Assembly: GCA_963924565.1 (NCBI GenBank) | Contig: OZ004609.1 | Coordinates: forward strand, 23,932,001 to 23,996,000 | Reading direction: 5' to 3' | Source of the DNA: Ascidiella aspersa | Taxonomy: Eukaryota | DNA: 64,000 nt | Shown here: positions 1 through 37,150 of the stretch, piece after piece | Layout: each line of letters starts with the position of its first letter | How positions within the stretch are numbered: the stretch's first letter is position 1 | The notes under the pieces: generated by a model | The model's database searches: none | The model's input: the letters and a program-made list of their open reading frames with translations, nothing else | Told to the model about the DNA's origin: nothing | Made by a program: the position numbers and the translations under genes

Positions 1-3586
<3,586 letters not shown>

Positions 3587-6500
3587 GTCGGCATTTTTGT
3601 TAGTTCTAGGACCAAAATCTGGCCACGCAAGGGAAATGTAAATGCGAGAACGACGCGCCGAAAAATGATTGTGACTAACTGCCAGTTTTTATGTCGTCCT
3701 GCGCGGTAAAAATATTCGCGATTTCTTGCGAAGTTGCCTACTCTAAAGCTTGTATCACGCCCCGACTGGTAGGCTGTTGGTTAATGTGCTCCGTGAAGGG
3801 GTTACTGTTGCGACCACGTCGTGCTTCTATCGTTAGTATTCTTTTTTAGACGGATGTAATGTAAATGTGCTGAATAAAACCACCCACGGCTCTGCATGTG
3901 ATTTGTAATGAGTCGAAGAGGATAGTAGGGATGGACAAACGTGTACAGTACACTGTACAATTAAAGATTTGCTTTAAAAAAAGACACAAACTTCGTATGG
4001 TGAATATTCATTCCTAGAGCAGTCAAGAAAATCATATCGACGAACCGATTTTACACCACTGCTAGATTATAGCAACGCATAAAGTAATAGGCGTATTTTT
4101 TGCCACAACCGACTCTACGTCAATTTACAAGCAATGTAAGTTAATCCGTAACATTAATACCTCGTGCAGAGTTTTTTTTCCGCAATTCGTTTTTTTTATT
4201 TCCGCAATTTTAAATATACATTACGTTTAGTTATGGCGATATCTTGACAGCTTGCTGTGCTGTTATCTATTTAGTTAATGACTTGACTTAAATGCAACTT
4301 ATTACCATTTATTTATTACACAGCGTGGTGTTTAAATGCGACGTATGACAATTGGCAAGCCTAGTGACTTCTACGAAATACCCTAGTAACATACACAAAT
4401 ATATCGCGGCTTTTCATTAAACACAAACCCCTCGTCATTTTTTTTTTAATTTTTCAGTGGAGTAAACACATTCCTATTAAATTATATTTAGTTTAATTGC
4501 TTTGATTGCAAGCTTACAGAGACCGTATGGAGTTTTGAACATAAAAAATGTGGCTGGCTGACTTGACCAGAACCCTGAAAAAAATTAGAGAAATACAATT
4601 TCCGTAACGTTTCGGGAATGTATTCGACGAAAACAGGACACTACAAGCATTTGGGCAATATACATTTTGGCGAGCAACGACATTAAATACTACATTGGTT
4701 TATTTTCAAGGGTTTCAAAGCCATTTAACTATAAAGAAATCAGTCACATTCATTTTGCGAATACCATATGTACATATTAGACGATTAGGTAAAATAATTG
4801 TTCATTTATAGGCTAAGCTGAACGAATAATTTACATATGCACGACAGCAAGGAATTCTGCACCGTACAATGTAGTTTCTGTACCGAAATCCGTTTCAGTC
4901 CGATATGCAACAAAATACATGTTTAGAAGAGAAGCTAGATTTGTGATATAAAGAATCGAAGGGTATTTTCGGCATTTTTTTTCTTAACTATGAAATGCTA
5001 CAGGTTTTGCCAAAATGTTTTTTCAGCGACCAGCGCCTCTCAAAGCATCAACTGCATCGTGATGTGCAAGAAATGTACTACATGGCGAGAAGGCAAATTT
5101 GAAAAAAAATAGACTGTTATAACGCAGCTACCCGGCGGATTTTGTAAATTTGGTTTTACCATTTTAAAGACAATGACTCGTACTAATGACCCTTCTTCTG
5201 CTTTAAGCTTGGGTAATATGGTGCCGCTATTTAGAAAGAAAGACGCGCTGTTACGGCGAGAAAGAAAGAGTGCTGTAACGGCGAGAAAGAAAGCAAAATC
5301 TAGAATGCTGCGAAAAAGCGAAAAGGATAAAGTGAATAAGCGAAGTCAGGACAGAAAAAATGTATTGGGCTAACGCACAATAATGCTGTAACTAAGGAAG
5401 GCCTGTCGCACTGGCGTCCATCAAAAAGGGCAGTTACTAGCAGGTGCCGCAAATAGGGTAAGTTTAAACAACGTTTTGGAGTCGACACTATTTAGCTTTT
5501 AAAAAAGCATTTATCGTCAGCCCTACCCATAACGATAAATAAAAGTTATACTAATAGTTCCGCGATTTTTTATTTGATTTCCGAATTGTCGAAGGAGAAA
5601 TAAACCCCACACTGAAGTGAGTTAACCGGATCACAATAAAAATACATAAAGATAGGCAAAAATATACAATACATCAATAGGTTAAATTGGGCAGAAAACG
5701 TATGCCTTTCCGCAAATACACACTTATTACAACAGTACAACAAAACACACGGAACGCGTTTGTAGTTAGTCTTTATCAATGCCAACACAACAGAAGAAGA
5801 TTACATTAAAGCTACAGCGGAAACACAGTGTTCGAACCGATCACCATTGCAAAGCAGCACCGTGGAACAACAGGCCCAACCTCTATCTAGCAAGCTCAAA
5901 CAACGAGTCGCTTGTACACGGGCGACGTTATGTATTGTCCTTTACGGTTAAAAGACCACATGTATAAAGCAGTGGGGATGAGTTAAATGCGAAGCAAGAC
6001 TTGCTAACTTCATATACACGCATTTAATTAAGAAAGGTGCTCTAGATTTCGATCTTTTATGAGTGATGTGCTCATATCTGTGTCAAGAATAATATGATTT
6101 ATGGTGGATAGCTTATACAGCACGGTAAGACTTGGGGATGGGGATGCTATATTATAAAGCAATCAATTCTTTGAAGACTCCGATGCCTTTGTCAAACAAT
6201 TGTCTGTTGACAATGTGAATATGTGTAAGTGCTTGTAAAAATGGTAAATGTTCCAGGTTCAAATATACAAGTTTCGTTTTTCCGAGTTATGAAGAAATAT
6301 AATGTATTTTTGCCAATTTTGGTTGTGGTCAGTCATTACTTCCACGGCTTGGCAATCTGCCTTTATTGCCCAATTAAGAAACGTGGGTAGAATGACGTGA
6401 CCGCGTCAAGACATGTACCATTATTTACAGTAGATTAGTAGCTATCTACTGATCAAAATAAAAGTCCAAGAATTAATATTTTATTCCACACTAAAAGCCA

Positions 6501-32747: not shown

Positions 32748-33940
32748 ATGCCTGGCAGCAACAGTATATTCAAATGGCCTATAGTTGCAACTTTTTCTTG
32801 TTTTTAAATTCGACTTAAATTGCACATTTGCGCACAACTCTTACCGTAATAACAAGTTCGTTAGCTTCTTTGTTTCATAGCATCGGAGTATTATGTCATG
32901 TTGCATATATTTGGCATCCTATTTTTGACCTGGCCCGCCACAACATTTTAAGTTTCCCATGTGGCCCACACTTATCAATAATTGCCCACCCCTGTGTTCT
33001 AACATTTTAAAACTAATAGTTCTATGAACAATATGTTTCATAGCCTCATCGCCCATGACCTTTCACTGTTACCTTCATTGTATAACAATCTGTATTATAC
33101 AGCCAGAGTTCACATTAATACAATATAACACAGACAGTGCTTAAATATGCCTGTAAATATGTGTGTAAATGTTCTTTGTTATCTTTGTTATTGTTATATA
33201 TGTTGTTTGTTGGCTAACCATTGGATTGTAAGTATAGCTCTGTTAATCAGCACGGATAGCACAATTGAGGTTTTTTGAAATGTAACCATTTGGAATTGTA
33301 AAATAAGTTGCAGATGAATAGTTGGGTTGAATACAAGACTTAAAATATTGTATGTTGCAATTGGGCACCCTTGAAAACATAGAAGTCCAATATGTGAATT
33401 TAGCTTCTGAAAGTGGTGTGAATTTTAGCTTCGAAAAGTGTGTTTATTAAACAATGAAAATTAGCTGTATAACAAGTGTAGTATTTTTTTGACAATTGGC
33501 TGTATAACAAATTAGGTAGGGGGGGCTTGCATGCCATTTTTTATTAGGTTGCATGCCACATTTGGGATGCATGCCGCGTGTTGGATACTCCTGGTTTAAA
33601 ACAACAAAAGGCCTGGTTCCTGACATGTTTATTGTAATGAGGCCTCTTTTGATCCTTAACTAAAGAGTCTTAAAGCCTTTTCTTGCTAACTAATTATGCC
33701 ACCTTTGGGGCCTGTACCCCATTGTTTGACAACACTAAATACAGTAGCAATTTCATTTTGTATGATATTTTAAAGATGAAGTTACCTAGAAATTTCTTTA
33801 CTCAAGCCAAAACACTGACTCACATGTATTACGTCTACATTGAAATAAAACACCATAATATTTTTAAATTCCATTTTATTTTTAGATCTAGTTACCATTA
33901 TTATACCAATAGCAATCCCACAGTAAAACTTTTGCACAAA

Positions 33941-36900
33941 ATGAGTCAGTCAACAGCACAAGGGATGGGAGTGGCAGTACCAGTGCCAATTCGTCGAATC
34001 CAGGTAGGTATATCAGATGCATAGATATTGTTAAAACTGGCAAATATGTTGTTTAAGGCATCAATATTCAATTTTAATAGACGCGTACAAAGCATAATTG
34101 TTGGTCATGTAAAATTTTTATAAATTTGAGTAATTGGGATATATTAATAATTGTATGTGTTTGCACTTCAGTTTTTGTTTTTTTATATTTTAAGTAATTT
34201 GTCATCTTTGAATTATGATAATTTTGTGTGGTGTGGTTACCCGCTGTTATACACATAGAACATAAGTGACAGTTAACTTCACCAAGGTACTAGTCTCACA
34301 TTATTAAATGCACAGCTCAACATATTAGAATCAGGATTCAACTTTTGTATTGCATTGTATAACAAACCATTTATCTTCCAAATAAACAAAACCAACAACA
34401 TGACACTTTCTCCCTAATTTCAACTAATGTTATAAAACAACTGGTTTACAGCTAGGACTTGTTTTTTACTTATTTTAATAGTTAGCTTTAAACAGTAGAT
34501 TGTAAATACATAATTCATTTATTTTGATTGCAGCTTGATCACATGTCTGAGCTGCCTCACAACTATGGAACAACACCAGGTGGAACACTTTTCTCAACAA
34601 CACCAGGAGGTAATTTATGACCTGCAGTTTTGCAAGCACTGCAACTAACCATGCCTGGCCTAGACTTATACATTTAACAGTGGCAGAAGCCAAAAATAGC
34701 AATTATTATTTGTAATAAAAGTTCTGGTTAGCTTACTAGCAACATACAAGGGTATTGTTTTGAAAAAACGTCAACAAAATTTATGTAATAAATGTATGAT
34801 ACTTCAATGTGCTGTCACTTTATTTAGTAACTAACATTTTAGTTCTAATTTTGGTAATATGGATACTTGTTTCAAATTTGTGATTTGTGCTTTTTACCGT
34901 ACAGTTGTTTTAGGAAAACTACTGAATTTGAGTCAAAAGATATATTATATTTTTATTTAAATGCGTTTAACTGCAAAAACACAGATTTGTTGTTTTCCAT
35001 GTGTGTCTATTGAAACTTCTGTAGTATCACTCAACATCAATGAAACTGGATATCCTGTGAAACAAGCGAGTTGTATTCAGGTTTCCTTTGAAAACTCTCC
35101 ATTAAACGCTGGGTGTTTTTAAACACTGATGATGGTGACAGTTTTAATTACAAGTAAAAGCATGTTGTAATAATCTAAGACCATTTTTATTGCAGCATAG
35201 CAACCATGTTTTTAGTTAATTTTAAGATAGTGATATGTTATTAATCCATTTGACAGGCACTCGCATAATCTACGAGCGCTCATTTCTTCTCAAGTGCCGC
35301 AACTCGCCATTGTCCAACACGCCACCGAGCAATCTTCCTGACATACCAGGTGTCACCAGTCCTGACAAATCACCAAGCAAACTTATCACAAGGATTGAAG
35401 AAGAAAAGGAGATTCCCAAGGAAAATGGTGGTATGAGTCCCGATAGCATACATTTTTCATATAATCAATGATAATTAATTTGTAAAAATAGGTCAATGGA
35501 TTTATGCATGCAAATAATTAATTTACATTAAATTTAGGTGGTTAATAAGTACGACATTTCCTTCTGTTTAATTTGTGCAGTGGTCTAAATATTAGTCAAA
35601 TTTCTTTAAAATCTTGATTTCAATGCAGCATGACGTGTTTCTAAGCAGTAGAAGTAGTGAATGACTCATACTTCGTGTGTATGATGCAGCTATTGCATCA
35701 TTGTTTTTATGGTATATTAATATTGTATAGCGCTTGATAGGCATCCTGTGGGTGGTGTTGCTCTGTGTATATAAATTTCAGGCTAAAACTAATATTCGAA
35801 CGTGCATGCTGCTAGCTAGTTTTATAGTGCATGCTCGAAAATGAATGTTTGACGCAGTTAGTGTGCAGGTCATTATTGGCAGCAAAGCCTGCGATCACCG
35901 CCGAGCCTGCCCCAAGCAGCCGGATTCGACGCCTTCCCTGTTGCACAGGGCCCTTTGCAGCAGTATAGGCAACGTAACTTCCTGCTGCAGCAAAACAATG
36001 CGATGGTTGAAAGCGCTTTCACTCCGCCGTCGCCCATATGCCCAGGCCTGTTAAGCCCGAACGCAATGCATCAGCAGCAGTCGCCGATGATGCATTACCC
36101 GCCGGCCTTGCCCCCGCCATTCGACCCCAATAACAATCGTTGCTCGGGCGACGGTCTCTGGCAGTTGGGCCAGACATTCGCCGCACTGCAAAGCAGCAAA
36201 GGCGGGCATCCGACCAGTCAGCTGAACGCCTGGCGACAGGCGAAATTTAATCAAGTCTTGTCACAGGCCGTTACTCAAACGTTGGTTGACACCCCGCAGC
36301 TGCTCACCAGTAGTCTAAGAAGCGCAAACGTCAACAGCAACAACGCAAGCAGCAGTAACGCCCATCATCAGGGTCACGGCTCGTATCGGGGCCGAGGCAG
36401 GGGTGTGCAAATTTCGGCCCCCTTCAACCACGTCAACCTGTGCAAGCCGATGCAAAAGCTCTTTTTGTCGCGGGATCAAGGTCCCGGTCACTTCAACCAC
36501 CACCAGTACAGCAACAGCGCCAATCAGGCGTTCGGCATGCCCATGTACGGCCAGTTGAAAGTTGATAAACCAGACCTGAAAGAAGTCGACGAGAACTCTA
36601 ACCTCGTCCAGTAAGCCCATCCACAAACTTGCAGCACAGTGTGTTTAGTTCAAGTTCTGCACCACCTAACGCTTTAACGTTTTTTGTTTTCAAAGTTTCC
36701 AAATCACCTTTCAGTGCAAAACGCAGCACAGCGTTCAGTTTAAGTTTCATAGAAGGTAAACTTATTTTGTGCTTTTGCCAGTTTAAAGGTAAACAACGTT
36801 GTTGTTTTGTAGCTAAAGAGTTATGACAGCCTTCGCAGGCCACTTTCACTCACCGATTCACTTGCAGTTTACAGCACAGCTATTTTCTACAGTATAAAAT

Positions 36901-37150
36901 TTTCACGTCAAAGGTCACTTTTTTGTGAAGGGCATTTTTGAGTTTTCGTGAGTTGTAATTTTGCATGTTGCATGCGTGTGTGTAATTTGCCTTTTGCAAA
37001 CCTGTAGCTTTTGCTTGTGCCTTTTGTCTCAAGAAACTTTGCCTTGGCTGTGCGTCGTTTGTCCCAAGTTATAGTCTATCGGAAAACGAAAATATTTTAT
37101 CTGCCGCAGATTCGCACAAGGATGAAGACCAATTCGATATGGAAATTTAA
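33941..37150 (+). CDS. EIF4EBP: Eukaryotic translation initiation factor 4E-binding protein (4E-BP), canonical 117-aa isoform
   Basis: Exons 33941-34003, 34534-34609, 35257-35430, 37110-37150 (TAA). They encode [27 protein letters not shown] (TP phosphosites plus the YxxxxLphi motif), [16 protein letters not shown] and the C-terminal TOS motif FDMEI. Confidence 0.95.
35505..36974 (+). promoter_or_regulatory. Cluster of five TGCATG (Rbfox-type) splicing motifs flanking the candidate alternative exon
   Basis: TGCATG at 35505, 35803, 35828, 36962 and 36969. Confidence 0.5.
35869..36614 (+). CDS. Candidate alternative 4E-BP exon encoding a Q/N/P/S/H-rich low-complexity tail
   Basis: GC-rich open frame inside the last 4E-BP intron. 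The acceptor tgcag|35869 joins the phase-1 donor at 35430 in frame with the 219-aa ORF 35955-36614. A GTAAGC donor overlaps the stop at 36611. Confidence 0.65.

Follow-up and report, generated by a model that had tools for sequence, protein, structure and literature searches.

The 64,000-nucleotide stretch of the genome of the ascidian Ascidiella aspersa analysed here (contig OZ004609.1, positions 23,932,001 to 23,996,000 of the forward strand; hereafter the window, in whose numbering coordinates are given) contains a gene for an eIF4E-binding protein (4E-BP). Read directly from the sequence, the gene consists of four exons on the + strand between 33.9 and 37.2 kb, the last of which encodes the target of rapamycin signalling (TOS) motif, and its final intron contains a further open frame that can be joined to exon 3 in place of the TOS exon. 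We refer to this frame as the tail, and to the products of the gene's two alternative ends in the window as the short form, which ends in the TOS motif, and the long form, which ends in the tail. Comparisons with related sequences lead us to put at roughly 0.8 the probability that the tail is a real, conserved, single-copy coding alternative to the TOS exon, lacking a TOS motif of its own, and that the 4E-BP gene has two alternative ends after exon 3.

The part of the gene common to both forms is that of a classical 4E-BP. Coding exon 1 (33941..34003; MSQ...IRRIQ, phase 0) was identified by sequence reading and by tblastn with a Phallusia mammillata protein described below (P0001). When the exons of the window are searched against Pfam individually, not as one spliced model, exon 2 (34534..34609) scores 38.9 bits with PF05456 (E 9e-10, profile positions 22-45) and exon 3 (35257..35430) scores 62.6 bits (E 4e-17, profile positions 47-95), against a cut-off of 24. 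Exon 2 encodes the TTPGGT phospho-site repeats and has a phase-1 end; exon 3 carries both the canonical eIF4E-binding motif YERSFLL (Y-x4-L-hydrophobic) and the non-canonical DIPGVT motif, ends with KENG plus a G, and has a phase-1 donor, G/GTATGA, at 35430 (here and below a slash marks the splice point). Proline-directed phospho-sites are found in these two exons as two copies of TTPGGT and one SP...TPP. Exon 3, which both isoforms share, is 91.5% identical to the Phallusia protein (tblastn with P0001).

The short form is completed by an exon of 13 residues ending in FDMEI and a stop codon (37110..37150, from sequence reading), whose DNA is 88.6% identical to that of L002, a contig from another animal that is described below. 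Joining 35430 to 37110 gives a product of 117 amino acids (aa). The tail exon (35869..36614; 248 codons and TAA) lies within an open frame of 250 codons (35862-36611) that is closed by the TAA at 36612-36614 and whose nearest in-frame stop on the 5′ side is a TAG at 35859-61. It is preceded by an intron (35431..35868) with the acceptor gtgtgcag/G at 35869, whose phase fits the phase-1 donor at 35430, and joining these two sites gives a product of 352 aa. The stretch from the tail stop to the TOS exon (36615..37109) would either belong to the long form as its 3′ untranslated region or be an additional intron. An earlier sequence-only reading of this DNA had proposed this junction, its coordinates, the 117 and 352 aa lengths and a stop-free GC-rich frame in the last intron, and all of these stand when the exons and phases are read again.

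The short form's FDMEI fits the TOS pattern F-[DEM]-[MILFV]-[DE]-[ILFVM], and no match to the pattern is present in the long form. Among the sequences examined, a regular-expression search finds no TOS-like pentapeptide in any tail, with the exception of a doubtful Ciona savignyi model (P0004) that continues into the TOS exon. The long form keeps all known eIF4E-binding elements and every proline-directed phospho-site, and it loses exactly the 13 TOS-bearing residues. With YERSFLL in the shared exon 3 and no such pentapeptide in the tails, the claim of the sequence-only reading that the long form retains the eIF4E-binding motif and drops the TOS motif is upheld.

Homologous tails and protein-level constraint

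By our arithmetic, the chance of a 250-codon open frame at the composition of this exon is about 1e-4 per start position. Chance origin is excluded because of homology: a search with the tail only recovers a 325-aa protein of Phallusia mammillata (P0001, 'Uncharacterized protein LOC100187288') that consists of a 4E-BP domain followed by a tail, with E 2e-49, 51% identity and 94% query coverage. Searching in turn with P0001 shows PF05456 followed by a tail in Clavelina lepadiformis (P0003, 319 aa), Styela clava (P0006, 384 aa) and Ciona savignyi (P0004, 313 aa); together with Phallusia these species represent the three traditional ascidian orders. A homologous tail is present in relatives, which the sequence-only reading had suggested should be checked, both in these four species and in the genomic contig L002.

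L002 and the nearly identical L003 were found in a metagenome scan and come from another ascidian-like animal. In L002, exon 1 begins with an ATG at 2421, exon 2 ends at 2611 and exon 3 ends with ...KENG plus G at 2856; after a 318-nt intron, the tail exon starts in frame at 3175 behind aatgtgcag/G and closes with a TAA at 3816-3818, and 494 nt further on there is the TOS exon with FDMEI. The tail therefore occupies the same position as in the window, and the donor and acceptor phases of the two loci agree. The acceptor context, AGTTAGTGTGCAG followed by GT, is conserved, with 14 of 15 bases common to the window and L002. The introns are otherwise unalignable between the two, global alignments of the flanking DNA being uninformative and giving short collinear blocks only. 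Two such blocks, TTTTGCATGTTGC and GCTTTTGCTTGT, are common to the window and L002 about 100-150 nt 5′ of the TOS exon.

The point at which the core gives way to the tail is the same residue in every case compared, reading KENGG/YFWQ in Phallusia, KENGG/HYWQQ in the window and KENGG/NVWEQQ in L002, which bears out the junction that had been predicted from the window only. A similar structure is seen in a clade of JGI/ENA contigs of 0.9-1.8 kb (P0029, P0054, P0062, P0061 and P0063), which contain single open reading frames (ORFs) running from the 4E-BP core into the tail. Because introns are present at these points in both of the genomic loci that were read (the window and L002) and absent from these contigs, the latter are probably mRNA-derived, if not from a lineage without the introns; under either origin, their sequences indicate that core and tail form one polypeptide in this clade.

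Comparison of the tails at the codon level shows that selection acts on the protein. The proportion of synonymous differences between the window and L002 is 0.87, which is saturated, while that of nonsynonymous differences (pN) is 0.36. In the 212 aligned tail codons, the same residue is found at 96 (45%), and 60 of those 96 are specified by a different codon.

The tail is present in a single copy in the 308-Mb genome, and a repeat or transposon origin, which the earlier reading had named as one way in which its proposal might fail, is rejected on that ground. Outside its own family the tail has no match in Pfam, in a PDB sequence profile search or in ESM Atlas searches, and all of its structural neighbours in the Atlas have TM scores below 0.35. 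A tail-only HMMER profile run against 1.84 billion representatives gave five matches, all of them tail-like, although this library seems to be without P0001, P0003 and P0006, so that its blank outside the tunicates is weak evidence. A profile built from six tails gave nine matches among 5.8 billion clusters, again all tail-like and, apart from P0001, unnamed. The tail family is apparently narrow, and from the sequences recovered it would be confined to tunicates as far as its named members show.

Translation, splicing and the 3′ end

A frame of this length could also belong to a separate gene nested within the 4E-BP intron, with its own promoter or with spliced-leader trans-splicing at 35869, in which case the core-tail fusions in the databases would be artefacts of gene modelling. 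Many tunicate mRNAs are indeed trans-spliced and operons are present (ANISEED 2015, PMC4702943), prokaryote-style gene callers report ORFs containing the tail alone (P0002, P0007, P0048 and P0049), and both GC content and GC at third codon positions (GC3) are higher in the tail exon than in the 4E-BP exons. However, neither the window nor L002 has an in-frame ATG between the upstream stop and the first conserved motif of the tail (motif 1, 35952..36017), the first ATG of the exon being out of frame, and the initial 'M' of the tail-only ORFs is a GTG or TTG start assigned by the caller. Because the upstream TAG lies three codons 5′ of the acceptor and no in-frame ATG precedes motif 1, translation of the tail would require that an upstream coding exon be spliced to it. 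In two species the acceptor has the same phase, 1, as the donor of exon 3, and in the P0029 clade the intron-less contigs have ORFs that continue from the core into the tail. A separately promoted nested gene, against which the sequence-only reading had itself cautioned, is therefore very unlikely, the missing start codon and the read-through contigs both speaking against it.

Hexamers that may bear on the choice between the two ends lie on both sides of the tail exon. UGCAUG is the binding element of Rbfox proteins, and on the + strand of the window TGCATG occurs at 35505, 35803 and 35828 upstream of the exon and at 36962 and 36969 downstream, giving five copies in 933 nt where 0.29 are expected (p 1e-5). 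The corresponding positions in L002 are 2915 and 3070 upstream and 3967, 4045 and 4125 downstream, or five in 812 nt with 0.57 expected (p 3e-4); inside the tail exon there is no copy in either the window or L002. Such flanking clusters, conserved in two species and reported here for the first time, are the sequence pattern looked for in exons under Rbfox-type control, and because they flank the tail exon in both species a regulated, perhaps tissue-specific, choice of exon is plausible.

In neither the window nor L002 does the stretch from the tail stop to the TOS exon contain AATAAA or ATTAAA, and the first canonical signals are located beyond the TOS exon. Because of this, a single poly(A) site serving both forms is most likely, and in the simplest model suggested by the sequence a single terminal exon with a single poly(A) site can be entered at either of two acceptors, 35869 or 37110. 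The tail may alternatively behave as a cassette exon, using one of the candidate donors 3′ of its frame at 36611, 36756 and 36789. A donor-like CA/GTAAG overlaps the tail stop in both loci (window 36609-36616, L002 3813-3820), and use of the 36611-type donor would shift the frame for four to five codons, ending in QFAQG and a stop in the window and in QFSQR and a stop in L002; the GTAAGC donor at 36611 and its QFAQG ending had been pointed out by the sequence-only reading and are indeed there. Because the Phallusia and Clavelina proteins stop inside the tail, without the shifted F(A/S)Q(G/R) reading, this donor is disfavoured in those two species.

The position of the tail stop also raises the question of whether the exon is unproductive, that is, a poison exon that tunes 4E-BP levels through nonsense-mediated decay and yields no stable long protein. 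The stretch 3′ of the tail stop has no canonical poly(A) signal before the TOS exon, so that the tail exon could perhaps be internal with its stop 5′ of the last junction, and regulated cassette exons typically have UGCAUG clusters on either side. A stop codon alone would suffice for such a function, however, whereas here about 250 codons are kept open and conserved in amino-acid sequence across distant tunicates, with synonymous sites saturated; moreover, a single terminal exon reaching as far as the shared poly(A) site would leave no junction 3′ of the stop, and hence nothing to trigger decay. We thus consider it quite unlikely that the exon serves only as a poison exon, and retain the interpretation of the tail as a coding alternative to the TOS exon.

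Two further features were noted outside the exons of this gene. One is TGCATGCC, which is present in three copies with a spacing of about 20 nt at 33520-33580, some 370-410 nt 5′ of the 4E-BP start codon, and which could be either a repeat or a group of regulatory sites. The other is a second 4E-BP-like exon on the same chromosome, 14 Mb away (G000:C3:9727851-9727985; L005, and L008:850-1010), which matches PF05456 with E 3e-13 and encodes a 4E-BP-type stretch and a basic stretch followed by a stop. Regular-expression searches of about 10 kb on each side of it reveal no TTPGG exon, TOS motif or tail, and the exon may represent a fragment, or else a TOS-less paralogue that has diverged.

Composition and motifs of the tail

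The tail exon differs in composition from its surroundings, with 56.6% GC as compared with 32.9% in the intron on its 5′ side and 39.5% in the stretch on its 3′ side. The jump in GC could suggest foreign, horizontally acquired DNA, an idea that we set aside since GC content is already 48-54% in the 4E-BP exons and tunicates share orthologues of the tail exon. As a separate observation, GC3 is 0.68 and the CpG observed/expected ratio 0.94 in the window, as compared with 0.42 and 0.34 in the L002 orthologue, an unexplained species-specific shift.

Seven conserved blocks can be recognized in the tail: PLQQYRQR(N/S)(F/L), SGDGLWQ, SQL(N/S)AWRQAKFNQ, YRGRGRG, a fifth block, P.YGQL and VDENSN. Only the first three of these are retained in the pelagic-looking P0029 clade. 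Motif 1, at tail residues 28-49, is the most widely kept part of the tail, being present in 13 of the 14 sequences examined, with the one exception an ORF that starts after the motif. Motif 3 (36216..36275, tail residues 116-135) has invariant S, L, W, R and K residues in the alignment. The arginine-glycine (RG) motif YRGRGRG (36384..36404, tail residues 172-178, from a regular-expression search) or a close variant occurs in 10 of the 14 sequences, with FGRGRG in Styela; the RG run is short and single, but judged by its sequence the tail qualifies as carrying a clustered RG motif.

An AlphaFold2 model of the tail, computed with a 10-row alignment, has a mean predicted local distance difference test (pLDDT) score of 50.5 and a predicted TM score (pTM) of 0.18, with helices only at about residues 28-49 and 117-135, corresponding to motifs 1 and 3. 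The Atlas model of P0001 has a pTM of 0.21. At a pLDDT of 50.5 the tail model is too poor for a fold search. The tail is thus predicted to be disordered apart from two helices.

The sequence-only reading had gone further and proposed that the long form is a prion-like 4E-BP that forms condensates, with Q/N-rich and RG-rich segments driving granule assembly. Predicted disorder, a Q+N content of 20% and the conserved RGRGRG motif are consistent with this proposal, and since 11 of the 14 sequences have a motif 1 compatible with a relaxed form of the eIF4E-binding pattern (Y-x4-[LFM]-hydrophobic), the protein could be bivalent. Classical prion domains are richer in Q and N than the tail, however, in which Q+N reaches at most 25% in any 60 residues (17-33% in relatives), and the N/S-rich patch at tail residues 152-170 is a species-specific insertion that is absent from the orthologues. 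Conservation is in discrete motifs and not in composition, there is a single short RG run, and Styela and the P0049 clade have lost either the Tyr or the Leu position of motif 1. We therefore find a prion-like, condensate-forming role unlikely, and the description 'prion-like' does not hold up; the tail is more aptly called a disordered segment that carries short linear motifs.

Two candidate motifs were considered and set aside. A second canonical eIF4E-binding motif at YRQRNF[LMIV] suffers from the same loss of the Tyr or Leu position in Styela and the P0049 clade and remains a weak lead. A PAM2 motif does not fit by its spacing.

Relation to known eIF4E-binding proteins

The N-terminal 105 residues of both forms resemble those of the canonical 4E-BPs (mammalian 4E-BP1/2/3 and Drosophila Thor; PF05456), with TTPGGT, YERSFLL, SPxxxTPP and IPGVT, and the short isoform shares the TOS ending as well. 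The long isoform, in contrast, fits PF05456 only to about position 95-106 of 117, has no TOS motif and carries a 248-residue tail that none of them has. The best analogy would be with 4E-T, Cup, Mextli, GIGYF1/2, Maskin and Neuroguidin, which likewise combine an eIF4E-binding motif with a long, mostly disordered region containing short partner motifs and are not under TOS control. Nonetheless, the tail has no sequence relationship to 4E-T, Cup, Mextli or GIGYF (Pfam, PDB, HMMER and Atlas searches), and the eIF4E-binding part is here a true 4E-BP, from the same gene as the classical form. The mammalian read-through transcript ANKHD1-EIF4EBP3 (MASK-BP3) is likewise a chimeric product of a 4E-BP locus arising by alternative splicing, but there an upstream gene is joined to a 4E-BP3 exon and the 4E-BP part is not known to remain a functional eIF4E binder, whereas in Ascidiella the core is kept and the C-terminal exon is swapped.

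The TOS motif docks 4E-BP1 on Raptor and is needed for 4E-BP phosphorylation, roles that are reportedly traceable to work by Schalm and Blenis in 2002 and by Nojima and colleagues in 2003. 4E-BP1 mutants without a functional TOS motif are under-phosphorylated and bind eIF4E more tightly. Such mutants (for example F114A) lack Raptor docking as the long form would, making the latter their natural equivalent; the mutants are laboratory-made, though, whereas the long form adds a conserved tail with possible regulation of another kind.

These parallels lead us to propose a course of events for the long form. Because the TOS motif is lost, we infer that it would be poorly phosphorylated by mTORC1, and it would then stay bound to eIF4E; the analogy with the TOS mutants makes this uncoupling from mTORC1 a sound expectation. 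The conserved helices of the tail and the RG motif would recruit other partners, and the long form would work like the large tethered eIF4E-binding repressors and not like a nutrient switch. The choice of end would probably be regulated, possibly by an Rbfox-type factor, and the long mRNA would share the poly(A) site beyond the TOS exon. Taken as a whole the proposal is a tentative one: it is possible that regulated 3′ exon choice, perhaps Rbfox-controlled, turns the main tunicate 4E-BP from an mTORC1 switch into a constitutive, partner-recruiting eIF4E binder whose tail would offer, as new interaction surfaces, an RG motif and a pair of helices, one of which (the first) looks like an additional eIF4E-binding helix.

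Several points weigh against these interpretations. The core-tail proteins in the databases are automatic gene models, although the Phallusia entry may derive from mRNA. At least one model disagrees on the 3′ end, with the tail running into the TOS exon: the Ensembl-derived C. savignyi protein P0004 leaves the tail frame after motif 3 and over residues ~255-313 reaches the TOS exon, ending …KDEEQFDMEI. This ending is either a mis-prediction or a third isoform with a partial tail and a TOS motif. A donor well 3′ of the tail stop, if used, could make the long mRNA a target of nonsense-mediated decay. A six-frame search of the genome for the Fox-1_C domain (PF12414) gave no match, although this is a poor test for a domain that is short, intron-split and of low complexity. 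The long form also retains a RAIP-like N-terminus and all phospho-sites, and some mTORC1 control may survive. Expressed sequence tags and developmental RNA-seq exist for Phallusia mammillata (ANISEED 2015, PMC4702943).

Full-text searches (4E-BP with ascidian or Ciona, the Ciona locus name, and TOS-less splice isoforms) found no description of such an isoform, and 4E-BP figures as the classical protein in work on Oikopleura mTOR (PMC6883708). The remark in the sequence-only reading that no such isoform was known accordingly agrees with these literature searches, but the proteins themselves are already in RefSeq, UniProt and Ensembl, unnamed and listed as 'uncharacterized protein'. The scope of the finding is limited to tunicates, and it could be tested in Ciona or Phallusia embryos. 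For this family of uncharacterized proteins without a function, it provides an anchor and a short set of motifs with which to search for partners.

4E-BPs are the textbook link from mTORC1 to cap-dependent translation, and in the standard view it is the C-terminal TOS motif through which they are controlled. An isoform occurring in nature that drops this motif and adds a conserved tail of 250 residues in distant tunicates would offer a ready-made test of what a 4E-BP does when it is freed from Raptor docking. If the proposal is true, tunicates would have a lineage-specific, splicing-based means by which cap-dependent repression could be uncoupled, in certain tissues or at certain stages, from nutrient signalling.

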